A stretch of DNA of 64,000 nucleotides from Klebsormidium nitens. Its lineage: Eukaryota; Plantae; Klebsormidiophyceae. The DNA lies in assembly GCA_000708835.1 (NCBI GenBank), contig DF237220.1, forward strand, positions 52,507 to 116,506, given 5' to 3'. The notes beneath the pieces are model-generated. The model was not told where the DNA came from, made no database searches, and was given only the letters and a program-made list of their open reading frames with translations. Positions 6,009 through 60,465 of the stretch are shown here, piece by piece; within the stretch, counting starts at the first letter, position 1; every line of letters begins with the position of its first letter. The translations under genes and the position numbers were made by a program.

Positions 6009-9000
6009 ATGGGCAACTGCGCCTGTGGCGCAAATGGCGCCAACGAGCGTTTTCTCAAGGAGCAAGTTCCTAACACCATAGCAAGTCTTTTTGAGTCGTA
6101 TGCTGGCCGAAAGATAGCTCTTTCCGTGCAGGACTTGCAGCAGGTTTTGATAGACCAGGTATGCGACCTTTCCCAATTCTGAACACTTGCAGAGGTCTGC
6201 ATGTCTGCACATGACTTCTTGAGGAGGTCTGCATTTTACTATATGTGGTGCAACATCATTCTGCTCAGCCTTTCTATAAAGCTTTCTGCAGGTTTAAAAT
6301 ACGTTTAAAATGTATGCTAGTCGTAGCTAGTCGAATGGACTTTATTGGGAAAACGTCCTTGTTTCCTCAGCCTGCTAATGCAAGCCAACATGAAGCAATC
6401 TGGTCCATCTATACAAGGACAATGAGACTCTCAGGCCACAGAAAACCCCAGCCATGTTCTGCAGAGGATCAACAATTCAGAGGCCCATGCGCGGCAGCTG
6501 ATAGTAAAGCACCGGAAAGAAGTAGCATCGGGCGGGAAAGATGCCCTGGAACTGGAGCTACCAGGCTTTGCCTCTTTCCTTCTTGATGCAGACGTCAATG
6601 CACTCCAGGATTGTGACAAGGTTGGTCAACTGGCAAACAACTCAGCTTCTTTTCACAGTGTGTCAGGTCTCTTGCATTACACACCTCTCAGCAACTAGAT
6701 ACCTCTTGTGGCTGGGGGGGCTTATCATGCGGCTTCATAGCACTAAAAAGCTGTTCAGGTGGGCCTGCTTTTGTGCTTAAAGAATAGGATGCCATAAATA
6801 GTTGGACCAATTATCTACTGCTCATCAAACATGGGTCCAACTTAGTGCGACTGTGTCAAGCTCAAGCTCAGCACTTATATTTGATCTCACCAATTTGACA
6901 CCAACTTGACCAAGCAACCCTGACGTTCACGAGAAGATTGCAGAATCGTTTAAAAGACAAGAGCGCTGGTGCAGCACCTATGTGTCAATTGAACAACCCC
7001 CTACCTTGCAGTCTAGCTTTGACTTCCTTAAGCAAAATCTATGCCCTTAATTCCATTGAAATCTCAGGCCTTCTTTAAGCTGTGATGGTTTGTTCTCTGC
7101 GGTAATATCAAGCTGCTCAGCAATTGAGGAATGCCCCTTTCCCAACTTTCCGTCTTCTTCACAAGTTGAGTTAGGTAAGCTACTTCCCTGCATCCAAACA
7201 TTGCTTGATTATTTCTGTATCCTTTTTGCAGCTTACCGTACACTGCCTGCTGAGATTAGCAGTCATCAAAGCTTCAAGTCTGACAACAATTTGCTTTACC
7301 AAAGATCTTCAGTACAGTCCTTCCTGAAGCTTTCAGAACAGCTTACATGGCTTTTCGTACCCCTTCTACCAAAGCAGTTCTGGTAAGAAAGATGACATGT
7401 GCATTGCTTTCATTCACTGTCCTTGAGAGCCCTTTCCTTCAATTATGTACCCGATGTTCTCAAAAAATGTAGTGCAGAAGCCTTAAACTGCTGGCTCGTT
7501 GGACATGTGACACATGGGCCCATACAGGGAAGAGAGAGTCAAAACGTGGAGTCCTTGAGCCACCTCACCTCTGAGCGCTTGAATCATTATCTTAAGCCCA
7601 TCATCACATTCTCCAGGTTACGAACAACATGCACCAGCCCCTCCCACAATATTTCATTCAGTCTGCCAGCAGAGCAGTTGAGGCGGCTGGAGGTACCGTC
7701 GCCAGCACCCTTCTTGAGGCCTTGAAGGGAGGTGCCCGTGTGGTCGACTTGGAAGCGCGAGCAGATGGGGAGGAGATCAAGCTATCCACTGGTGGAATGT
7801 AAGCTCACCCATCGGTCATCTGTTTATTACAAGACATGGAAGGTGCCTTTCCAGGTCTCTTGGCATGTCAAACGTGTCAGAGGGCAAACAGGAGGATTGA
7901 CCGTGGCAATGACTGGTTGTGATGCAAATCCTGTTTATGGGCTCGAGAAACAGTATATGTCAAGGTGCTCCCCGAGTCCTCATGGGTATGTTTCGCCTTG
8001 ATCTGTAGAGTGTTCTTATTTTCCTTGAGTCAGCAAAGATACTTTGGCCAAGCGTCGCAAGACAAAAGCCAAAGCTAGATCAAAGGGTTCGCCCGTCTGC
8101 CAATTCGATTTCTTTGAAGCTTGTATCCTTGCATGCTTGCATGAGCTTGAATTTTGACAAAAGCTCCCGTTGGTGCTGCAATAACTTGCTCACAACACTC
8201 TCCGCAGCTCAGATATCTGTAGGCGATCACTCGGGACCAGCCCTCGCTTCTTGACTATGTCACTAGAGAATTGTCATCAACATCTCCTCAACCTTGCGAT
8301 TACAATTTCTGCAGCACTGCTCCCATACATGAGTTGCTGACTGCGGTCAAGGAGGGGGCGTTCTTGGCGTCAGACTTTCCTATCATCCTCGTGATCGAGA
8401 ACCGTCTCTCTGCACCGCTGCAGGATCTCTTAGCTCAGGTGTGTTTTGCTAAGGAGTCGAATGGGCGTGCTGGCACTTAATATTTGATCTTATTCAATGC
8501 TCTCAAGTGTCAATCTCTGATCCTCCATCTGGACCGAGCTCTTTACAGGCTGCTTAAAACCTTTTCTTATCTAGCAGGAACCTGATAATTTGTAAGTGGA
8601 TTGGACATGTCGCGGCATTAGTCAAGGACAGACTGTTTCTCAAACGTCAGCAGCAGGTATTGGTGCACATGAGATTTGATAGTCCTCCTGTAAGCAGCCT
8701 TTTCATTCTGTACAAGATTGTTGTATATGCACACGCAGCCAAGAGCGAAAGGGATCCCTTTCAAATTGCTGTTGATCGAAGCTGCAGTGGTACACCTGTT
8801 TGATTCAAGGTTCCCATTGCTTTCCTGCAGCAACTGAAGGACATTTTCGGCGAGTCGCTTTTCACACCCCCCAGTGGGACACCGGGCGCTGTTCTTCTCT
8901 CTCCGAGTGACCTAATACGGAAGGTCGTGATTGCCGAAGTGGCTACTGAATCACCGCCAAACGAGGCAGGCTCCGCAGCCGTCACCCCCAACAGCGTCCT

Positions 9001-12000
9001 TCCTCTGGCCGGCGCCTCTTTCATCGATCTGGACGACATGCAAATCAAGGGTAATAAGGGTGTTCCTCTATGAATGACATCATGAGGACACAACTCTGGG
9101 GCTGTACTTCATCATGAAGCCTCGACCGCATGCCTGGTTTCTGTGAGGCTCTTCCCTTGCTGCAATTTTCTGTCGCCTCCCTCTTCTGCATGAATTTGAG
9201 AGAGCGTCTGGGCTCTCCTGGATAATCCTACCGGACGTTGGCTGGCTGGATCCATTGTAGGACGATCCAAGAAGTGCTGCCCTCAGATGACTCTACTCCA
9301 AATTGAGCTCCACAGAGTTACGCTGGCGGTGGATCTCACCATCTAAATGACCAGCCGTGGTCTCTGGGAGCCTCTTGTTGTTGCCAGCTTGCCTGAGACA
9401 TTTCGCCGCCGCGTCTTCTGCAGCAGACAAGCGAGTCGGCACACAGAGACAAGCGGCAGCTTTGCTTGGTCAAGCTGATTCCAAGGAAGAAGGCAGCTTC
9501 TCACCGCTGGTCTACATCCGGGGCCTTAAGGCGTCGGAACCAACCCACTACGCTGAGAAAGTTGGCACCCTAGCGAGCCTGAGCGAGGCTTCTTTCTCCA
9601 AATTGGCGGGCTCGACTCCTTCGGTGCTAGCCAAGTAAGCAGGGGCTTTCGAGGTTGCGGCGGTGCCTGCAACTGTGGCAGATGTAGCAATCAAACACCT
9701 TGAAGCAGCTTGCATGGATCTGAATGTGTTCGTCCACTTATTTGGAGCTGAGTTCTGACCGTTTGAACGTCCTCAGTCACAGGCTTAGACGCTGCAGATG
9801 CAGACTCCCTTTATCACCGAAGTGAAGAGACCGCTGAGATGAATGTTCGTTCACTTTTCCTTGTAAACGGTGACGAAGAGCTGGTCCAAGCCATGCTTTT
9901 CTCGTTCTGTCCAAGTTTGGCATTGCAAAGGTTTCAAGCCCTGCTCATCTTCCTCTGACCTGACCTGACCTGCCCTCCCCAATCCGACAGGTACGCCGCA
10001 AACAATCTGATCCGCGTCTATGGTCCTAATGGAGAGACTGGCTTCTCTGGCCCCATGAAGGCCTGGTCCTACGGAGCCCAAATCGTGGCCAGCGATACCA
10101 AGGTGCCTGTCAATCAGTCCCCTTTCCTACGGTAGGAGTGGCCAGGTTACTAGAACTCGTTCAGCTCGTATCCACTGCCATGCCCTGTTCGTTTCGCATG
10201 CAGCAACTCTTTGGTCGTCTTCATCATTGCAAAGATTGGTTGAGTGACGCACATTACCAGCTTTCAGTCTGCCCCACCTGGACCAAATTCTGTATCAGAC
10301 CCAGCGCCTCTGACAAACAACCGTCTTCAGGCTGAGTCGAGGAGAAAGACAAGTGTGAGTCCGCCTCTATTAGTCTGAGACTGTGTTTTGACAGGCGCAC
10401 AAAACACATGCAGCTACGCCAGGAAACGCGGAGACAAGGAAGAAGTGGAGAAGACGTGTGGTTGAAAGGCGTTCATATCTTCATTACAGTGTGAATATAT
10501 CGTGTGATGGATAATCAACCATGTCATAAGTCATACTCCTCTTGCGCAGGCGGGCGGAAGGCAGCAAATGCTCCAGCAGGGCTTCTTCTCGGCCAACGGC
10601 GGTTGCGGCTACGTGCTGAAGCCTGATATGTTGAAGGCGGGCCCGAGCATGGGAGCCGCCGTCGATGGCGCTGCCTTTGATCCCAAAGCCAAAAATCGTG
10701 TCAAAACGACGCTCAAGGTGCATATCTTTCACACGTGATGCGCATTTTTCTGAGAGTGTCAGCAGCTTTCTCAGCCGCCCACGATACGATCTGCTTCTCA
10801 AAGAGCTCAAATTTGCTCGGGGATCGAAGAGGCACAATTTTCGCATCTGGTACATGGAAATGAGCCTTTCAACTTTCAGTGTGACGAGTACCCACGGTCA
10901 AAAATTGCCCTTCTCAATTCAGCGGCGGGACACCGTGAGGCAGTCTGCGAGGTTGAGGGCACGCTGAGTGTTTGCAAACTAGCTGCAGGCGCTCGAAAGA
11001 AGTGCTGGGAGTTCTCATGATCTGATGATCAGGTTACGAGATTACATGATCAGCCGCGTCGATTTCGTACGAAGAACTCAGAAGATCGACGTTGACAGCG
11101 CTCTAGACTGGTGATGTTCCATTTACACGGAAGTTTTCTCCCAAGACAAATCAGCGGACGCTCTTGCGATGCACCCTTTTATTTTTGCATATCAGCAATC
11201 TGAATTTGCAAGAAAAGTTCTTGAAACGCGCTTTTATTACCCAGCTATCATCTGAATTTTACGGCATCGAACCCCTCTAGCGGGAACTTGCTGACTGCCG
11301 TATACCCAAACTGTGAGCTCTGCCAATCATTTGATAAGTCTCATCTGACGTGGCGGCATTGGCGTTGCAGGTCATGATAGTTTGGAGCCAGTCCGACCAG
11401 ACTGCAGGGCGACCCGACACGTTCGTACGGGTGAGCCAGGATACCGCGGGCGTGCTTTGGATGCAGACAATTTCCATCTCCATGATCGCGGCAGCCGGTC
11501 TTCGAAAGACAATCTGTTTGGGATACATAGGATGAAGAAGTGTCGGAGAAGATGCATGCGGAGCACAAGGTTGCAACCACCTGACGGTTTCACAAGCACA
11601 CGGCGACAGCCCTAAGGGGATTGCCTCAACCCCCAATGCTTAATCTTTCACTGGACGCAGCGAATCTAGTTTCTCAAATTGGTCTGGCTTTGCTTCGCAA
11701 AGCGGGGATCCCACTCTGCAGCTACAGTACGTATTCTCTTTCCGGGTGATCGTTTCCATATCCTTCTCGCGCGGCGTTTGGAGATTCAATCGCCAGATGT
11801 GATGCAAAAAGCGATCGTCCCGTACCAAAGTTGAAAGAGAACGTGCCACTGTCATGGTCGCAGGTTACAACGCACGGAGTCCCTGCCGATCAAGGAACGT
11901 ACGACACCACGTCGTGGTCGGATGACGGCAAGCCCGCCGCTTGGGAAAGCGAAGAATTTCACTTTCCGCTGACCGTCCCAGAGCTGGCGCTTCTTGCAAT

Positions 12001-13289
12001 AGAGGTGGGAAAGTCCTAGAGCATCTTTCTTTAGCCGTGACACGAGATTTCCTTTCAAATTTCTGCCTGGGCTCCGTTTGAGATGGATGCGTCTCCTGGT
12101 CCGGAATGAAGAACCGGCCTTGGCGCAAACAGATTTACGTAAGTCGCATCCCAATTGTATGGGGTGCTTGACGTTTTCTTCGATTAAGTGCTGATTTGAC
12201 TTTACGGTGTCCAAGCGAGTGGCCCGGCGATGAGTGCATCAAGCTTGAAGACAGATCCAGCCTCTCGCGACCACCTTAATTGTTCTGCGAGTCTGTCGAG
12301 AAAAGTGAGTGTTGAGTCGAGAAAAGCGAGTGTCGTGTCTGTTAAGAAAAGCTTCACAGATTGCCTGTACAGCACCCGGTTCCATCGCAGGTGAAGACAC
12401 CAAAAGTTATGAGAGATTTTGAAGATTCCTTTACGGGAGCATTTGTTTTGGTCGGCATTATCCGAAGTTCTTTGCCAGTGCTCCTCTATCAAATGCCGTT
12501 CTTCAAACTTTCTTAAGCTCCCAATTCACTTGCTCGTATCTGGGGATTGTTTTGAAGGCTTCTTTCTCGCGGTATTGCAAAAAACTCTCCTGCTCGGAAG
12601 CTCCAGATCGCTCCATTCGGACCTTCCTTAAAGGAAAGCTCCTTTCCGGACAGGTCCGGCAGTACAACGCCCAGCAGCAGGACGTCTTAGCCTCCCAGGC
12701 CTGCCTCCCGGTCGCAGAGCTTAAGCCCGGTTTGCGCGCCGTCATGATGAACGACGCGAGCGGGTTCCCTCTCCCGGACGGCCGAGGCCGCCTACTGGTT
12801 CACGTGGAGCTTTCTCCTGCGGGCGACGGGTTTATTCCTCCGGGGAGCGCTGGCGTGGCCTTAGAAGTGCCCGCGGTTTCTACGTCTGGCGGAGCGCCAA
12901 CTTCTGGGGGGGCGCCGCAGGGTGCTACGGGAGCCTCTCAACAGGTGGTGCATACCCGGTACCAGGAGACGATTATCCACGAGCGACGCCGCTCCCCGGT
13001 GGTGCCGTTCTTGGGGGGCATGCTCGTGGGGCGTATGCTTGCACCGCGGCCACGTCAGCAGGTGATGGTGGTCAACAACAAGGCTCCCGCCCCGAACAGG
13101 GTCGTAAATACTAACGTGACTGTGAACAAGGGGTATCCAAGACCCGGGGGGTCCTCCTATGGCCGGCCCGCACCGGCCGTACGAGCAAGCGCGCGCCCAA
13201 GCGTGCGAGCGAGTGTGGCGTCCTACTCGAGCGCACGGCCGGCGAGGGCTGCAGGTGGAGGTGGGGGGCGAGTGAGAAGAAGGCGATGA
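6009..13289 (+). CDS. Phosphoinositide-specific phospholipase C-like protein (EF-hand-like, X, Y, C2 domains), probably catalytically inactive, ~719 aa
   Basis: Eleven in-phase exons: 6009-6158, 6465-6620, 7617-7798, 8315-8438, 8831-9050, 9424-9634, 9991-10102, 10550-10717, 11371-11430, 11864-12004, 12654-13289. PLC landmarks: MHQPLPQYFI, AFLASDFPIILVIEN, IFGESLFTP, SLSE, NNLIRVY, WSYGAQIVA, GFFSANGGCGYVLKPD, FHFPLTVPELALL, QACLPVAELKPGLRAV. Confidence 0.88.
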
Positions 13290-14450: not shown

Positions 14451-16566
14451 CTACTGAACTTCGAAAAAATCTTCGCTCATTAGGTCTTTGTCCTCTGGGT
14501 TAGCCATCTCCAGTTCTTGTTGGAGTTTTTGCACTCTTTTCGGTCTATCGATCTTTTTATACAACTCTATCATCGAGAGGTAAGCTACCTGATCGGGTGG
14601 ACAACCTGCTTTCCGCATCAACTTCCAATACTTGATCGCTTTGGCGACTTCCTCTGCCTTGCCGAACGCCGTGATGAGGGTGGTGTACATTTGGACACTA
14701 GGGTGCAGGCCAGCCGCTCTGACAAATTCGAGTATAGCCTCAGCATCATCGAAGCGCTTCTGCTGTACGTACGCCTCCATCATGCTGCTGAACGTGAACA
14801 AGTTTGGGGCACACCCCGCCTCTTGCATGACCTGCAGTATCTTCTCCGCCTTTTCTACATGCCCCCCTTTCGCATAAGCAGCAACCATCGCACTGTAAGT
14901 CACCACCGATGGTTCGTGCCCGGCTTGAAGCATAGCTCGGAAGGTCCTTTCCGCCTGCGCCACCAAGCCCTGCTTTGCATACGCATCTATCATGGCACTG
15001 AAAGCATAAATGTCAGGCGCGCACCCAACTTGCTGCATCCCCTCAAACGTCGCCTCCGCTTTTTCCACATCCCCGGCCCGGGCATAAGCTGCGATCAGGG
15101 CGGTGTATGCAAACACGTTGGGCAGCACCCCTTGTTCCAGCATGTCCTGCATCATCTGCTCTGCCCCCTCCGCCTGCCCCGACTTGGAGTGCACCACGAT
15201 CATGGCGCTGTACGACCAGGCATCCGGCTTCAAACCTGCCCCCTTCATGGCTGCCAGCACATTCTCCGCGTCTCGCATCAGGCCCCTCTTTGCATACCCC
15301 GTGATGAGAATGTTGTATGTCACCGTGTCTGGTGCTATTCCTGCCTCCTTCATCTCCGTAAACAGCGCTTCCGCTCTTGCCAGCCTCCCGGCGTCTGCCA
15401 AGGCTTTGATCGCCATGTTGAAAGTCCGGTCCAGCCTCGTGTAGCCAGGCTCTTTCACCATGAAGCGAAGCACCTGCCAGGACACCCAAAACGTCTCTAT
15501 AAGTCAGCAGCCATGGAAGCGATGCTCCTAGGTCTGACGCTGCACCTTTGAAGCCAGGTTCTGACGGCAGCAAGCACCACAGTATGCACAGCAGTAGGAA
15601 AGTGGAAAGAAAAGGCGAAGAGGAAGAAACAGTAGGATGACGCACAGGAAGGAGAGACAGGCGCGCTTATCGTTCTCCACATCTCTGTTCTATCACCTCA
15701 GGACAAAGAGCACTCGTTTGTGCTCAGGGAAGCGCAATAGCAGAGGATTATAAAAGCGACCACAAGGGCAGGAAAAAATCAGTATCAGGATCACAGCCGC
15801 CGAAAGAGATAGATAACGAACTGTCTAATTTTCATCTATCATGAAACATTGAAGTGAACCACTACAAGAGGTCAGGCAGCGAGCGCACCTGCAAGCAGTG
15901 GTTTACTTGCTTTTCTTTGACTAGGGTGTTGAACAGCGTGACCATCAATCCCTTTGCCGTCCGCGATAGAGTTTCGAGCATGTCGCGCACAGCCGCCTCA
16001 TCCTCCGCAGTCCTCAGCATCTCTATCGCCTTTCTGACATGCGCATCTGGCTCAAAACCAAACGGGCCAAAGCGTTCTCGGAAAAAGTCTCTCCTCCTGC
16101 CAACTTGCTTTGCACTGTTGGGCTTCTGACCAGCTGGGGCCTGCTGTGCTTCCCGTGTCCTTATCCAAGAATCCACAGCATTGTCAACCTCAAGTTGCCC
16201 GGGCTTTGTACTTCTTCTTAAGTCAGATTTTGGGGCTGCTTTTCTGATATTCGCAGTAGGCTGATCTGTGTCTCTTTTCACTCCTCTCCTTGATTCTTGC
16301 CGTTCCTTAGGTGGTGGTGCTGTCTCAACCACAGAGAAGTCCTCCTGATTAAGGCTTCTGATCTGATGAATGCTGTGCGTTCCTCGGTTTTGCAGGCTGA
16401 AAGGCGAGCTTTTTGGAAGCCACACATGATTCCTACAATTGGTGAAACCCCTGGATTGTGCAGTGTCACATTGCAGCTGTCCCCGCCGCTGGCGAGCCTG
16501 GTCCGAAGGTGGGGCAGAAGGAAGGCAGAAAGGGGCGCCCAGCGCACGCGCTTCGGCTCCAGCCAT
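14451..16566 (-). CDS. P-class pentatricopeptide repeat protein, probably organelle-targeted, ~566 aa
   Basis: Exons 16566-15889 and 15473-14451 (CLQ|VLRF, GT-AG). Eight full 35-aa repeats plus one partial, e.g. TYNILITGYAKRGLMRDAENVLAAMKGAGLKPD. The N-terminus is Ser/Arg/Ala-rich, like a transit peptide. Confidence 0.92.
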
Positions 16567-25418: not shown

Positions 25419-32618
<7,200 letters not shown>

Positions 32619-51500: not shown

Positions 51501-53816
51501 CCGCTTCACCCCCCGTCACAGTCCTCTCGTCCGTTGACGGGCTCGGCCCCCCACGGTGCGCAGGTGTCCGACCGCGAGGAGCTGCTGGACCTCCAGAAGG
51601 ACGAGAAGAACCAGGCCAGCGCCATCCGGTACGACACGCGGCCCGCACCGGGGGAGAGCAAGGTCATGCTCAAGACGTATCTGCACAACATCGGGGACCT
51701 CGAGTTCCAGAACGAGTGGGGAAAGCTCTGGTGAGCGGACCCGCGCCGCTGCTCTTGCGGATGATTGAGCAAGCATGGGTGGTTATTCATTTGTCCACAT
51801 CAGCACGCTCCTCGTCCCCGGTCGACTTGGTGAAGGCATCGATCTGCGACGAAGTCAACACGGGCATTTCGCAATCAGGTGTTTCTCTGGTTTGAGAAGG
51901 TCCCGTCTTGGGTGGAAAAATCCTGGCTTTCTGTTGTGCCTTTTTTTCGCAAGAATGATATTCTTTGACCATATCTACCGTTCCTGATTCCGAGCGCTAC
52001 GAGCATGGATCCCTTCGTAGTTCGTTTCGTTAACTGTATCTGTTTGAATGACTCTGCTGTCATAGTGGGTTCCGTGTCGGAAAGCTTGTCAAGAGACGCA
52101 CGCAGCAGATTGACTGCTTCGACTGGTGTGACCTGATGCTTGTGTGAAGCGGTGGGTGCCACTGGTTGCCGCTTCGAATGCGAAGTGCTCTGGAGGCTTT
52201 CGCGCCTCGTATTCCGACTTTATGTCCTCGCATTGCCTGTCCATGGAACCTGTCTCATCTGCAGATTGTTTTGGCGCAGACCTCTTTACAGTTGTTGCCT
52301 CGCATTGCGACATCGTCTACACCGCGCCTTTGTTGTTGGTAGCAAAACTGGGTTCGGTTGGCTTTGAAAGCCGTGTTTTGCCCCGGGGGAGATGATGTTT
52401 CGGTAAAAGGTCTGAGCGCAGCCTCACGGCTCCGCACCCGCTGCTCGCCCCTCGCTTGGCACGTGGGCTGTACCCCAGCGGTGCTCGTAAGCTATGGATC
52501 ACTGTCTTCGCAAGCAGCCCAACAGGACCCTAATTCTGCCCGCAGCCCAGTGGCTGCGGGCCACGGCCGATCTTTTTACCCCTCCAGCATAGCGTGTGCT
52601 GAGGAGACAGATGTCGGCTGGTCAGCGATGTGCCGAGGGAGGGCTGGGCACTCAGCGGTGGCCCCCGACTGCGCGCATGATTACGATCATTGTCCTGATC
52701 CCCTGGGCTCTTCTGATTGTCGTTTTTCATCGGCTTTGTTTTTATGGGAGGTCTGCTTTGCTTTGCTTTGCTTTGCTTTGCTTTACTCTAGGATTGCATT
52801 CTGGATAGGTGACTGTAAGTCTTTTCCTCGTGCAAAGCTGACGCACCGAGGCACTCTATCTATGCCTTTCAATCTGAGTTTCAAAATGTTGTGTCCTCAA
52901 CGTGGCCCCACTCGTCTTCTGAGAGCTTTGCACTAGAGACCTATTGAACGACCCCCGTTTAGTCGTTCCTCGGCATGTGTCTACCTTTGATTTAGTAAAG
53001 TAGCCGAATGTCCTTTTGCGACACAGTTAACCATGAGATGGAGGCGATGCCGGCCCTGGTCTCTCTCACTTGCCTTACCATCTTGCGCTTCTCAACAAGC
53101 CTTTTTCGCAGACTCTTATCTCCATCCTTTCTTTGCTGCTTGCTCAGCCTTGCGAGCAGTCGTTCCATCAGTAATCTCAATGACTTCATTGCCCTCGCCA
53201 CGTCTGTATTACCGTCAAATTCCGGAGCCTGGACTTTCGTTTAGGGTTTTAGGGTTTTATTGTTTTAGGGTTTCCCTCAAAAAGTCTTATCTTATAGGAG
53301 AGTCGAAGTGGCTATTCGCAAGTCCAGTCGAGCGTGGAGTCATGTCCTCACCGCTGATTTGGGTCACTTCGTTTGCAGGATCGATCTGGGCACGTCGGAC
53401 GCCCTAGCCCTGGACGTTCTGCTCAACGCGCTCTTGAAGTTTAGTGATGAGTGCGTGCCCTATCCCTTCTCGATGCGAGCCTGGCCGTTTTACCTGACAG
53501 CGTGCGCTGTGCGTGCAAGGTCTTCAAATGATTTGGGTAGCACTTCAGATCTTGTGCGTCTAATCTGGCACGTGGATCTTATGAAGGGCACTAGCCCGCT
53601 GGATCCTGCAACTGTGGATTGTCTGCTTCCTATTCGAGTTTCTGTCAATCTTCTCTCGAAGGAGCTTCCTTCTCTGTTTACTGATCCGCTGAAAAGACTT
53701 TGCCTCCTCCGTGCAGTTACGTGGGCATTAAGCAGATTATATTTGGTGGTCAACTAGAAACATGGGACGGTATGATGGACAAAGAAGACAAAGAATACAT
53801 GAAGATTGTAATCTAG
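48591..53816 (+). CDS. DUF3531-family plastid protein (cyanobacterial origin), ~440 aa
   Basis: In-phase exons: 48591-48984, 49340-49616, 50014-50101, 50355-50440, 50757-50835, 51078-51137, 51564-51730, 53379-53450, 53717-53816. The translation IVFKNFDPFDLNIWI...ILRSWYMLGKIGAYNSANLQ...YLHNIGDLEFQNEWGKLWIDLGTSDALALDVLLNALLKFSDDYVGIKQIIFGG matches the DUF3531 pattern as recalled. Confidence 0.82.
52754..52784 (+). repeat. (GCTTT)n microsatellite
   Basis: About six copies: CTGCTTTGCTTTGCTTTGCTTTGCTTTGCTTT. Confidence 0.9.
53240..53273 (+). repeat. Interstitial telomere-like repeats / telo-boxes
   Basis: TTTAGGG TTTTAGGG TTTTATTG TTTTAGGG TTT inside DUF3531 intron 7. Confidence 0.75.
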
Positions 53817-55137: not shown

Positions 55138-58100
55138 CTAATCCAACCTGCGCGTCAAGGGTGATGTAGGAGACACGAGACAGTCCACCTTGGCCGTCGC
55201 TAAATGACCTTCTATGGCTGCCCTGACGTCGTTCGGGCGGACCGGTTTCGACAGGAAGCTGTCCATCCCCGCTCTCAAACACTTTTGCGCGTCGTCCTCC
55301 AGGGCGGACGCAGTGAGGGCAATGATGAGGTGCCGCCGGCCGTGCGTCAGCTCGTCAATCCGTATCTGACGAGTGGCCTCATACCCGTCCTGCGAAGAGG
55401 AAGAACCGGCTTCAAAGGCAGCGCAACATGAGACTGGCATAAACAAGACCTGAGAACGGACTCCGATTCGTTACAGTTGTCTTGCCAAACCCTCGTGGCA
55501 TAGGTATGTGCCAGACAGAGCTTCCATAAGAAGGGGCGCTTGCCTTTCCTTCAAATCTCGATTCAGGACCTGTGTTTCGACGCCACGCTGACAAGCTTGT
55601 CAACCTGAATCTAATAAACGTCGTCCCTCGTAAGAGACAACCAAGCCCCGTGCATCCGATCCTGGCTGGTTCGTGCGCTCTCACCAATTCCGGCATGTGG
55701 CAGTCCATGAGGACCACGTCGAAGCGGCCCTCGCGGCACGCCGCCACCGCCTTTCGCCCGTTGTCCACCACCACGAACTCGCAGCCCAGGCTCCGCAGAA
55801 TGCGGCTGGCCACCATCTGGTTCACCGTGTTGTCCTGCAAGGCCAGCAGTCCACGTCAGCATGGCAAGCGGCACGTGGCACTTCTTGGCATTCACAATCC
55901 TCACAGACGAACGCACTTAGCAGCAAGCGCACCGGCCACAAGCCGACGGAACTCCTCGCACAGCCCTCAGCTGACGACAAATCAACCATACGCCTCTGCT
56001 CAAAGGGTTGTTCTCGAGAAAAGCGCAAGACTCGGGCCCTCGAAAGTCAGGATTGGGCAGCGTTCCAAGTGAGATTGAACAGAAAAGCAGCCAAGAACAC
56101 AGGGCATTCATCTTCGCTGACAAAACGATGGGGCCTCGTCTCGATTCCTCTTGGTGGGCGTGTTGTTGCAGTGTGCTCACCTCTGCTACCAGGACGTGCA
56201 GGCTGCGCAGTGTGTCCTTGGTCAGGATGCGCAGCGGGGACAGGCTGCCGGCCACAGTAGACGGGTCGGCAAGCAGCGGGGCGCTCCCGCTGGATGCGCT
56301 GGCGGCCTCTGCGGATGGGGCCTGGCACACCGAAAAAAAAACTCAGGTCAGACAGAATCGGCAAGAATCGGTGGCTCGCGTTTCTCGCTTCGAAACGGTC
56401 AGCTTAGCCATGAGTATGGAGCGTGAGTCAAGCGAGGGAAGGGAGAGAAAAGCCAGTCAACAGGACGACAGAGCACCCGGACACTGAGACACACGGCTTC
56501 CAGAATGTCCCATAGCCGGTGCTAATCACTTAGAGAAACGTCTACTAAAATCGACCGATGCCGCCTGCTGGTCGAAAACTCTTTTCCTTCTCAGGGTAAC
56601 CTTTTGGACGCAACACTTGCCTCGAGCAACCAGAGGAGCTACTCCGCCGGAGCATTTTACCTGAGCAGACAGTCATACCGCGCATCAGGTGATACTCTGC
56701 AAGTAGTAGCACGTTCCCCTCACCTGCGCCTCAGGCCCCCCGCGGGGGGCGGGCAGCCCCAGTCGGATGGTGAAGAAGAAGGACGTGCCCTGGTCGACCG
56801 CACTGCGCCACCAGATCCGCCCTCCCATCGCGTGCACCAGGCTCTGGCTGATGCACAGCCCCAGGCCGGTGCCCCCTGCAAAGAACGGGTCGGCAAGCCT
56901 TAGCAGGGCTTACTACGACGACGAGACAGACAGGATGCACGGCAGAAACGCCACCCGATGCGCAGGAGCAAACACGGGGCTTGACGACTACGTCGCAGAC
57001 TGCCATAAACCGCTCCTTGCCTTGAGGCACCGCTACGTTGTCGGATGCTGAAAACAGAACTTAAATTGTCGTTGCGTCCCGTTCTCTGTCCCCCAGCAAT
57101 CGACCAGCCATGATGCAACACAACAATTGACGCGCCCCGAAAACCCGCTGTTTGTCAGAGAACGCTCGACAGAGCAGCCATATCCGCTGCTCACCGTAGC
57201 GCCGCGAGGTGCTGCTGTCGGCCTGCATGAACGCCTTAAAGATGCGCTCCTGCGCCTCCTCCGGGATGCCCACCCCCGTGTCCCGCACCTCGAACTGCAG
57301 CGCCACGCCCGCCTCCTCCGGACCGGCCTCACCCAGCGGCCTGCTCGTCCCCACTCCATTCGCAACCCCTCCACTTCGCCGCGCTGCATCCGACTTCTGC
57401 CTCTCCAGTTTCAGGCCCCTCGAGCCTCCTTCAGCTTGGTTTGAGCTCTCAACCCCGGCTGCCCCTTCCCCGACCAGCCGCACGGCGACCTGGATCCCGC
57501 CGCTGTCCGTGAACTTGAGCGCGTTGCTGAGCAGGTTGAGCAGGATCTGGCGCAGCCGCATGGGGTCCCCCACCACTTCGTTCGGCACGTCGTCGCTGAC
57601 GTGGACGCCCAGCGCGAGGCCCTTGTCGCGCGCGCCGCGGTCCAGCAGCGCCAGCGTCTGGTGCACCTCCCCGCGCAGGCCGAACGGCAGCGTCTCCAGC
57701 TGCAGGTTGCGCCCCTCGATCTTGGCCAGGTCCAGGATGTCGTTGATCAGCTTGAGCAAGTGGTCCCCCGACCCCCGGATTGTCTCCACGAACCCGCGCT
57801 GCTCCGCGCTCAGCGGTGTGTCCAGTAGTAGCTCCGCGACACCGATCACGCCGTTCATGGGCGTCCGGATCTCGTGGCTGCAGTTGGACAGGAACTGGCT
57901 CTTGGCCGCGTACGCCGCCTCAGCCTCCTCCTTGGCCGCGCGCAGCGCCGCCTCGGCCGCCTTGCGCTCCCTGAGGTCGTGCCAGATGGCAATGAACACC
58001 TGGCGCCCCTCCAGGCTCAGCGCCTTGATGGACACCTCCGTCGGCAGCGGAACGCCGTCGGCGCGAATGTGGTCCCACTCGAAGCGCTCCACCTTGCCCG

Positions 58101-60465
58101 TCTCCTTGGTGGCCTTGAGCCGCGCCGCAGCCTTGTCCGCGGAGCGCTGCCCGTCGGACTGGAACTCGGGGCTGAACTCCAGGATGTAGCGCCCAACGAC
58201 GTCCGTCTTGCTCTCGTACCCCAGATACTCGACTGCCGCCGCGTTGCACTCCAGGAACCAGGAGTCGGAGAAGACGAGGTAGGGGTCGGTCGCAATGTTG
58301 AAGATGGTCTCGAACTTTTCGGTCGCGGAGTGGCGCTCTGTGATGTCGTGGATCACCCAGACCTCACCCTGGGGGTGGGTGCCGCCACCACACTCGAACA
58401 GCCGCTTGCTGCCGTCCTTCCGATACAGCTCGGTCAGTCGGACTGGGGGAGTGGTGATGGAGCTGTCCTGAAAAAGGGGGAAAAGCTTACGGTTCAGAAC
58501 CGAAGCAACGACAAAGCCAGAATAAAGTGTCCAAACGAAATGCTCCCTGGTGCTTTGCATGCAATGGGCACCTACTTGACTTAGCTCCTCAACAAAAGTA
58601 GACGCTTCCCGTCAGTCCCCCTGTCCAGAAAATGTCAGCATTCACCATTTCCAGATACTTGTGAATCAAGCAGTGTCTTGCCGGCGCCTCACCCTGAGCA
58701 GGCGCATGCGCTCCTGGTACGCCGCCAGCTGGCTGCCGTCGTGATCCTGGTGCAGCAGGCGGAACCAGGCGAACAGCGTGGGCACCTCCTCCTGGGAATA
58801 GCCCACCAGGCGCTCCATGGCCGAGTTGATGAACACGCGCGGGTCAGCAGCATCCCCCGAGCGGTCGACTTGGATGGCGCTCACGTTGATGTTGTCCACC
58901 ATGAGCTGCAGCCGCTGCTTCTCCAGCGCCTCCTCCTCCGCGATCTGTGCCTGCAGCAGCAGCTCCTTCAGCTCCGTGATGTCGGTCGCAAACCCAAACA
59001 CGCCCTGCCAAGGAGAGAAGAAGAGTTAGCACGACCACGAATAACACCAGTGTTTGCGCCTTGGGTCCCTACACTAGGCAGGTAGAGCACAGTTAAAGCG
59101 GTGGCCAGTCACTCAGCTTTTTAAACTGCTATCCTGTGGAAGTTCGATTGAACGGTTGAGTGAAACTGCCGGCAACTTGTTGAAGCAAGGTGCTGGCAAA
59201 TGGATGCAGTGCAGCTCTTCTCACTCTACTTTGGGGTTTGAAAAGCAGTTTTCAGATGTAAAAACCGGGATATACTGGCATAAAACCCCCAACATAAAAG
59301 CACAGTCAAGGAGTACAGGCGCATAAACCAATTGTACTACCAGGGTTGTGTCACCCATCCTGGGAGCCGCCCGCGTTGAGGCTACGTGAGGGGTGTCTGC
59401 CCCGTGCTTAGTCCCGTTTGGGTCTGCACCCCTGGCGTGCTCACCTGCTGGCCGTCCACTGTGGTGTATGGCTTCTTGACGTGGCGGAACCAGCGGCCGC
59501 CCTGGCTGTTGGTCGGCTGAAGGAAGAGGTCGGGAACATCAAGCGGCTGGCCCGTCTCCAGCACAACGTGGTCGTCGCGCTTCAGCGTCTCCACCAGCTC
59601 TGCGTCCTGCGTCCCCCCAACGACCTCAGCGAAGCTGCGCCCCAGCAGCGCCTCGCGCGGTTGGCCCAGCTGCTCGCACATGGCACGGTTCACCATCGTG
59701 TAGCAGCCCTGCACAAAAGGGGAAATGCATGAGACAAAGACAAGGGCGAGGAGCCGAGTCCCAACTAGTAGAGTCCGACGGTCATAAGGGGTCAACAGAG
59801 CTCTTCTCATCAGTGCTTTGACTCGGACTTAAACTTTGAGTCTCTCTGTCATTCCTCATTCCTCAGCATGTGTACTGTCTCAAATACTTGTAATGCCAAA
59901 ACCCATCGATTTTTCGCACCTGTGTAGCTAGGAGGGCCCCGACTTTTCTGGGGCCCAGCAAGGAACCATGAGCAGCCTCCTTAGGACCCATTCTTGGCCG
60001 CACAGCTGCAGTGGGCACACTTTCTATGTTGTTGCTCACCTGCGCGTCCTTTGTGCAGGCTACCCCTGGCAGCAGGTCCATCATGTACGTGTAATGCTCC
60101 TGCAACGCCAGCACCTGGGCCTCCAGCTGCGCTACCCGGTCGGGCTCTGCTCTGTCGGGCACAGGCGAGAAGTGCACAAGCACGAGACAGCGCTCCAGCT
60201 TCAGCCCTGCCACTCCGTTACATGCACCCACAGCACCCCTGGCAGGTGCCACTCGACAGAGCTCCATTTCTACCATGACTTGCAGCTGCGCTGCAGCTTC
60301 AGCCAAGGACGGTGCAGTAGGCGCGCCTCCTCTGCTGTCGTCTCCTCGCAAGGGCTCTGTGTGCGTTCCGGTCGAGTCAGTCAGGCTGCAGTTCCCCATG
60401 CTGGCATCCAGCTCCTCCTGGCCCACGTAGCCGTTCCTTGCGCGGGTCCCATTGAGGTTACCCAT
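55138..60465 (-). CDS. Soluble hybrid histidine kinase: 3 PAS/PAC domains, HisKA, HATPase_c and receiver, ~989 aa
   Basis: In-phase exons: 60465-60040, 59708-59445, 59004-58693, 58467-57195, 56875-56724, 56321-56181, 55834-55685, 55389-55138. H-box SHEIRTPMNG, N-box LLNLLSNALKFT, G1 DTGVGI, G2 GGTGLGL. Receiver: LVAEDN, MDCHMPELDG, FLSKP. PAC termini DITE, DITE and DLRE. No TM segment was seen. Confidence 0.92.

Follow-up and report, generated by a model that had tools for sequence, protein, structure and literature searches.

A plant-type phospholipase C homologue of Klebsormidium nitens without the catalytic histidines, maintained by purifying selection

Non-catalytic relatives of phosphoinositide-specific phospholipase C (PI-PLC) have been established in animals and predicted in plants, and they are the closest described systems for the gene considered here. 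This gene lies at 6009-13289 on the forward strand of a 64,000-nucleotide stretch of Klebsormidium nitens DNA (the window; GenBank assembly GCA_000708835.1, contig DF237220.1, positions 52,507 to 116,506) and encodes a PI-PLC homologue of the plant type. In Arabidopsis, PLC8 and PLC9 form a clade predicted to be inactive on account of the substitutions H311L, H356P, E390K, and K440R, in PLC-delta1 numbering as used throughout (PMC11209554). PLC9 displays heat and drought phenotypes, and both knock-out and over-expression phenotypes with changed inositol trisphosphate (IP3 or InsP3) levels have been reported (PMC11209554). Whether the pair is inactive is still debated, as its activity has yet to be assayed; the PLC9 authors leave room for residual or alternative activity and consider that the protein might shield lipids or serve as a silent partner (PMC11209554). 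In animals, the inactivity of PRIP/PLCL is established, and this PLC binds phosphatidylinositol 4,5-bisphosphate (PI(4,5)P2 or PIP2) and InsP3 together with protein partners (PMC5511194, PMC4035314). The preliminary description of the Klebsormidium locus, made from the DNA alone, knew of no equivalent; the Arabidopsis and animal proteins precede it, and that statement was wrong. The literature on Klebsormidium PI-PLC yielded nothing relevant.

Domain organization and family membership

The evidence makes it probable that the locus is a real, selection-maintained gene for a non-catalytic descendant of a plant-type PI-PLC, that is, a PLC pseudoenzyme. Its eleven exons, bounded at all introns by GT-AG in favorable sequence context, join into a single open frame of 719 codons that runs from the ATG at 6009 to the TGA at 13287-13289, in agreement with the earlier claim that all exons splice in phase without a stop. 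The 719-residue protein displays the plant-type order of an EF-like N-terminus, X-box, linker, Y-box, putative C2 domain, and basic tail, without a PH domain. The interval first singled out, 7617-9050, corresponds exactly to exons 3-5 and thus to the X-box, and each of the motif strings quoted from the gene in the preliminary description is found in the DNA at its place. The exons are as follows.

6009..6158, + strand: exon 1, with the start codon, the MGNCAC N-terminus, and the beginning of the EF-hand-like region; 60% identical to exon 1 of the orthologue L001 (introduced below)
6465..6620, + strand: exon 2, remainder of the EF-like N-terminal region (RINNSEAHARQLIVK...FASFLLDADVN); 67% identical to L001
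7617..7798, + strand: exon 3, first part of the X-box with YFIQSASRA, VDLE, and KLSTGG; reads ...QPLPQYFIQSASRAVEAAGG...GARVVDLEARADGEEIKLSTGG
8315..8438, + strand: exon 4, second part of the X-box, Glu390 equivalent kept and ENH changed to ENR; reads ...FPIILVIENRLSAPLQ; 69% identical to L001
8831..9050, + strand: exon 5, end of the X-box (RKVVIAEV) and beginning of the X-Y linker; reads ...LLSPSDLIRKVVIAEV
9424..9634, + strand: exon 6, last part of the linker followed by the first part of the Y-box; contains SLSE (Ser522 equivalent)
9991..10102, + strand: exon 7, core of the Y-box with RVY (Arg549 and Tyr551 equivalents)
10550..10717, + strand: exon 8, end of the Y-box (NGGCGYVLKP) and link to C2
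11371..11430, + strand: exon 9, first C2 strand or strands (VMIVWSQSDQTAGRPDTFVR); conserved in L001 in identical phase
11864..12004, + strand: exon 10, C2 core (KPAAWESEEFHFPLTVPELALLAIE); 72% identical to L001
12654..13289, + strand: exon 11, end of C2 (CLPVAELKPGLRAV...LLVHVEL), a Pro/Ala/Gly linker, the basic tail block, the terminal RRRR, and the stop codon at 13287-13289

The assignment to the PI-PLC family, which had been proposed from motifs, is confirmed by Pfam searches carried out exon by exon and by comparison with solved structures. Matches to PI-PLC-X (PF00388, cut-off 23.1 bits) come from exon 3 (profile positions 1-51, 18.8 bits), exon 4 (68-106, 23.6 bits), and exon 5 (108-141, 16.2 bits), of which only exon 4 passes the cut-off by itself. 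PI-PLC-Y (PF00387, cut-off 28.8 bits) is matched by exon 7 (52-84, 13.4 bits) and exon 8 (91-113, 26.2 bits), each of which stays below the threshold because the domain is split between exons. The X and Y matches follow the correct order along the gene. Per-exon scores of 13-26 bits are low and lie far below those expected for a canonical PLC; introns cut the domains, and the protein is strongly diverged. Exons 1-2, which are EF-like by position and place about 100 residues ahead of the X-box, have no Pfam match, nor does exon 6 by itself, and no single exon matches Pfam C2.

For the structural comparison, individual exons were each aligned with their orthologue, and the resulting profiles were searched against the PDB. 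The exon 3 profile retrieves PLC-beta3, gamma, and delta1 and aligns with YFINSShntyltagQLAG...CRCVELDVW of PLC-beta3; as a single sequence, exon 3 finds no PLC in the PDB. Exon 4 retrieves PLC-epsilon and beta (on the PLC-epsilon stretch PIIISIENHCS), and exon 5 retrieves PLC-gamma1 (stretch LKRKILIKHKK). Exon 7 matches PLC-gamma2 (E=6.5e-4, LTRVYPKG) and PLC-delta1 (E=3.6e-3), with RVYP on RVYP. Exon 6 alone has no PDB match; its block GSFS.LVYI.GLKASEP.H.A.K.GTLASLSEA shows 73% identity to L001. For exon 10, every one of the top eight PDB chains is a PLC C2 region, although the matches are weak (PLC-delta1, E=0.13); the position after the Y-box and the motif FPLTVPELALL agree with a PLC C2 domain.

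Canonical plant PI-PLCs, such as AtPLC2 and the Chara braunii protein GBG82993, have the same domain order as the Klebsormidium protein; GBG82993, the single PLC of Chara braunii, is described as an ordinary AtPLC2 homologue. Their motifs PL..YFI, G.R..(E/D)L(D/E), AF..S..P.IL..EN, S.SE, R.Y, NGGCGYVLKP, and FPLTVPELALL remain recognisable in the algal protein. The canonical enzymes, however, keep His311, Asn312, His356, and the lysines of the active site (PMC11209554), all of which the algal protein lacks.

Loss of catalytic residues

His311 and His356 form the general base/acid pair of PLC. In PLC-delta1, Lys438 and Lys440 hold the 4- and 5-phosphates of the substrate, which is also contacted by the residues equivalent to His311, Asn312, and His356. 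For rat PLC-delta1, losses of 6,000- and 20,000-fold are given for mutants of His311 or His356 (Ellis 1998, as relayed in PMC11209554, where they are worded as reduced PIP2 binding).

In exon 3 of the window, the canonical YFINSSHNTYLTAGQ is replaced by YFIQSASRAVEAAGG, which is 4 residues shorter. The SHNTY loop is substituted, and the alignment with PLC-beta3 bears out the predicted loss of both the first catalytic histidine and the adjacent Asn312. In L001 the same loop reads YYIQTA----QAASG, 8 residues shorter than the canonical form, and the orthologue motifs are YYIQTAQAA, VDLE, and RVTFGG. The acidic pair Glu341/Asp343 is swapped as described, from VELD to VDLE, in all three known copies of the gene, and yet is present. 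The position of His356 is occupied by T in the window (KLSTGG) and by F in the orthologue. This assignment depends on spacing and on the absence of a conserved X-box histidine rather than on a tool alignment of the position. Between VDLE and AF..S..P.IL..EN, L001 contains no histidine at all and the window holds only the non-conserved H168. Since no histidine is conserved in the X-box between window and orthologue, His356 is lost under any alignment, as had been claimed for the second catalytic histidine.

Further changes affect the remainder of the pocket unevenly. The Glu390 equivalent is retained, and the motif around it was described as IENR in place of LEDH. The change from ENH to ENR is present in the window but is not a family trait: the orthologues keep ENH, and therefore the window's Arg is recent and local. 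The Lys438 and Lys440 equivalents are lost, with KILIKHKK of PLC-gamma1 corresponding to RKVVIAEV (Ala/Val) in the window, as anticipated, and to RRFVIAEGK (Ala/Gly) in L001. Conversely, the Y-box residues expected to be kept are kept in all copies: RVY (Arg549 and Tyr551 equivalents) by alignment with PDB structures, and SLSE (Ser522 equivalent) only by its motif and by its canonical spacing to RVY, read directly from the sequence. The former catalytic positions themselves vary between window and L001 (S/A/S/R against a deletion, T against F, V against G), which fits a function lost there within a conserved scaffold.

Exon 3 is one uninterrupted block that extends from upstream of PL..YFI to beyond the His356 position, and the loss of histidine is therefore not a splicing artefact. 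An extra exon restoring HNSY or LHG was also sought in the DNA: a scan of the introns of the whole gene in all frames found no stretch encoding HNxY, ELDxW, or HGxT. With introns free of such motifs and orthologue similarity restricted to the eleven exons, a hidden catalytic exon was rejected.

The comparison with the known inactive PLCs reveals both a shared pattern and differences in detail. PLC8/9 and the algal protein have in common the EF-like/X/Y/C2 organization without a PH domain, with a C2 domain that is putative in the alga, the absence of both catalytic histidines, a change at Lys440, and retention of the gene. The substitution set is not shared, and none of its four positions carries the Arabidopsis residue: in the alga a shorter, different loop stands at His311, a T takes the place of His356, Glu390 is kept, and Lys438 and Lys440 are A and V. 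No report on PLC8/9 mentions a swap of E341D/D343E, an MGNC N-terminus, or a basic tail of about 150 residues. PRIP and the algal protein are alike in that a PLC scaffold, delta-like in PRIP, was retained after catalysis was lost. PRIP binds InsP3 through its N-terminal PH domain; the algal protein lacks such a domain and instead displays a putatively acylated N-terminus and a basic tail. The two lineages differ, and their resemblance is therefore convergent. In its details the loss matches neither the Arabidopsis nor the animal case, which suggests that it arose independently of both. We take the algal protein as an independent and more thorough instance of a dead PLC, a kind already known.

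Orthologues, selection and genomic surroundings

Orthologues were found in uncultured relatives. A protein search with exon 3 against 1.84 billion representatives identified one true relative, a 53-residue exon fragment (P0001) that is 56% identical and likewise without histidines. Two further hits of this search (P0002 and P0003) were rejected as low-complexity chance matches. The fragment is located on a 30-kb JGI metagenome contig (L001, also L004), and two SRA runs (L002 and L003) contain a sister sequence with about 87% DNA identity. The L001 gene matches that of the window in all ten intron positions and phases, and every difference in exon length is a multiple of 3. Its frame is open for 734 residues, with 58% identity to the window protein over 696 positions. 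Both proteins contain the MGNC start, the catalytic losses, the C2 motifs, the tail block, and the terminal RRRR. Similarity between the two loci is restricted to the eleven exons, and the tblastx similarity starts exactly at the ATG. The losses are common to the orthologues of two related uncultured algae and are therefore old.

A metagenome scan with exon 3 produced no further members, and the one candidate from a scan with exon 10 (L005) was rejected as a chance match of 21 residues. Word searches with the exon 11 and exon 4 regions also returned no matches, a result of little weight given that the length filter leaves out full-length PLCs.

The gene is under purifying selection, the dead X-box included. 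Between window and L001, the non-synonymous rate (dN) is 0.33, the synonymous rate (dS) is 1.6-2.3 and thus saturated, and their ratio (omega) is 0.14-0.21, with about 0.23-0.25 in the X-box. The comparison of L001 with L002 is unsaturated and covers exons 1-5 (278 codons): here dN is 0.014-0.017, with a dS of 0.15-0.16 and an omega of about 0.10; the X-box alone gives 0.09-0.11. The underlying counts are 10.5 differences at 629 non-synonymous sites and 29.5 at 205 synonymous sites (p=3e-11). In the same pair, introns are 78-91% identical and exons 93-99%. The dN/dS check against algal orthologues advised in the preliminary description thus yields about 0.10 for the close pair and 0.14-0.21 for the window, far from 1. 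Together with the open frames and the conserved orthologues, these ratios uphold its statement that the gene is not a decaying pseudogene.

The same observations bear on the reading that the locus is an unexpressed relic or an artefact of gene modelling. In its favor, searches of the public protein collection did not recover the protein. Against it, an identical set of exons with open frames recurs in three independent assemblies, insertions and deletions occur only in multiples of 3, similarity is found only in exons, selection at an omega of about 0.1 is significant, and an uninterrupted exon 3 leaves no place for a micro-exon that could restore the His311 loop. We regard this reading as very improbable.

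Selection also bears on a second reading, in which the protein is still an enzyme with a remodelled pocket that employs another base or acid or acts on another substrate, such as phosphatidylinositol (PI), phosphatidylinositol 4-phosphate (PI4P), a glycerophosphodiester, or a cyclic inositol phosphate. The pocket is partly intact in its acidic pair and in the equivalents of Glu390, Arg549, and Tyr551; purifying selection on the X-box is as strong as elsewhere in the protein; and for Arabidopsis PLC9 the case has been made by its authors that loss of both histidines need not abolish activity (PMC11209554). Nevertheless, the X-box contains no conserved histidine, the Asn312 and Lys438/440 equivalents are lost as well, and the former catalytic residues vary between orthologues, as would be expected of relaxed constraint at those sites rather than of a new catalytic set. 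Continued catalysis of this sort appears unlikely.

Some further features of these loci were recorded. In L001, an extra intron at 9464-9758 interrupts the C-terminal tail, where exon 11 of the window is continuous, so that an intron was gained or lost between the lineages. Intron 10 of L001 (8261-8292, also in L004) starts with four tandem copies of TTTTAGGG, a telomere-type repeat in an interstitial position; this array is only loosely compatible with a Klebsormidium-like alga. The window itself contains one imperfect dimer of TTTTAGGG at 53239-53254.

No second PLC copy or active paralogue was found within the 64-kb window. The neighboring features are listed below; for the 769-residue open reading frame (ORF), Pfam returned no family and an exact look-up found no called gene on record.

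595-1605, + strand: ORF encoding a WW domain (Pfam E=2.6e-10); it lies in GC-rich DNA, upstream of the PLC-like gene
14451-15485, - strand: pentatricopeptide-repeat ORF (PPR_2, E=2e-87), directly downstream and on the opposite strand
14517-15551, + strand: mirror ORF equal in length to the pentatricopeptide-repeat ORF, probably non-coding
30309-32618, + strand: ATG-started ORF of 769 residues, located where the GC content of the window is highest (66% GC)
57061-58560, - strand: ORF of 499 residues with PAS, HisKA, and HATPase_c domains, a histidine kinase and probably one exon of a larger gene

Membrane attachment and possible role

The two ends of the protein are conserved outside the PLC scaffold. 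The MGNC start is shared by window and L001. In calcium-dependent protein kinases (CDPKs) and calcineurin B-like proteins (CBLs) of plants, motifs of this type receive an N-myristoyl group at Gly2 and a palmitoyl group at Cys4, and the algal MGNC is a likely candidate for the same two modifications. At the other end, the tail of about 150 residues has an isoelectric point of 12, with 22 Arg and Lys against 3 Asp and Glu. It contains a block of about 55 residues, VVH..TR..ETI.HERRR..FLGG..VGRML.PR.RQQV.VVNNK.PAP, at approximately 12969-13130 within exon 11, and the terminal RRRR; both are conserved between window and L001. The tail matches no Pfam family, and its ESM Atlas matches (scores below 0.9, bacterial hypothetical proteins) were not taken as meaningful. 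A transmembrane helix in the tail was rejected, as the hydrophobic run comprises only about 15 residues and includes an Arg.

Canonical hydrolysis of PI(4,5)P2 or PI4P would be beyond a protein with this composition. It would probably be seated at the membrane through myristoyl and palmitoyl groups on MGNC, the putative C2 domain, and the very basic C-terminal tail, a combination that points to the inner face of an acidic membrane. From such a position, the pseudoenzyme would probably act by binding rather than by cutting. The remnant pocket, formed by the Asp/Glu pair and the equivalents of Glu390, Ser522, Arg549, and Tyr551, could take up or mask either a lipid headgroup or Ca2+, and the protein could partner or compete with active PLCs or their regulators.

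A narrower version of this role was put forward in the preliminary description: a phosphoinositide or inositol-phosphate binding scaffold in which the dead site itself holds, sequesters, or senses the headgroup. In its support, all copies share the equivalents of Ser522, Arg549, Tyr551, and Glu390, and animal PRIP offers the precedent of a dead PLC that acts as a PI(4,5)P2- and InsP3-binding regulator (PMC5511194, PMC4035314). Nonetheless, the substrate contacts made by the equivalents of Lys438, Lys440, His311, Asn312, and His356 are all lost, and the loss of both lysines weakens the case for PIP2 or InsP3 binding in the pocket. Exons 1-2 give no match to a PH domain, the part of PRIP that binds InsP3. 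Headgroup binding by the old site is therefore one possibility among several, and a rather doubtful one.

Several observations also weigh against the interpretation of the gene as a PLC pseudoenzyme with a binding role. Without the Lys438/440 equivalents, the old pocket is less likely to bind polyphosphoinositides tightly, and residual activity would be compatible with the sequence, by analogy with PLC9. Moreover, the known sample is narrow and comprises three related lineages only. The window's own protein, with exon 3 as query, is absent from a collection of 15 billion proteins, and the gene may be unannotated or mis-modelled.

Inactive enzymes that act as regulators are a recurrent theme, and for PLC the animal PRIP alone is established. 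Against this background the value of the algal gene is moderate: it provides a candidate for experiment rather than a new principle. It offers a cleaner natural test of a non-catalytic plant-type PLC scaffold, because the loss is fuller, common to diverged lineages, and accompanied by clear purifying selection, and it flags two conserved additions, the putative dual-acylation start and the basic tail block. As a tentative extension, which we consider possible but would not presume, Klebsormidium-like streptophyte algae may possess an old, undescribed family of lipid-anchored PLC pseudoenzymes, defined by MGNC, a dead X/Y barrel, C2, and a polybasic tail, that is independent of both PRIP and PLC8/9 and regulates membrane phosphoinositide and Ca2+ signaling by binding. 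If true, such a family would represent a third, convergent invention of a "dead PLC" regulator.

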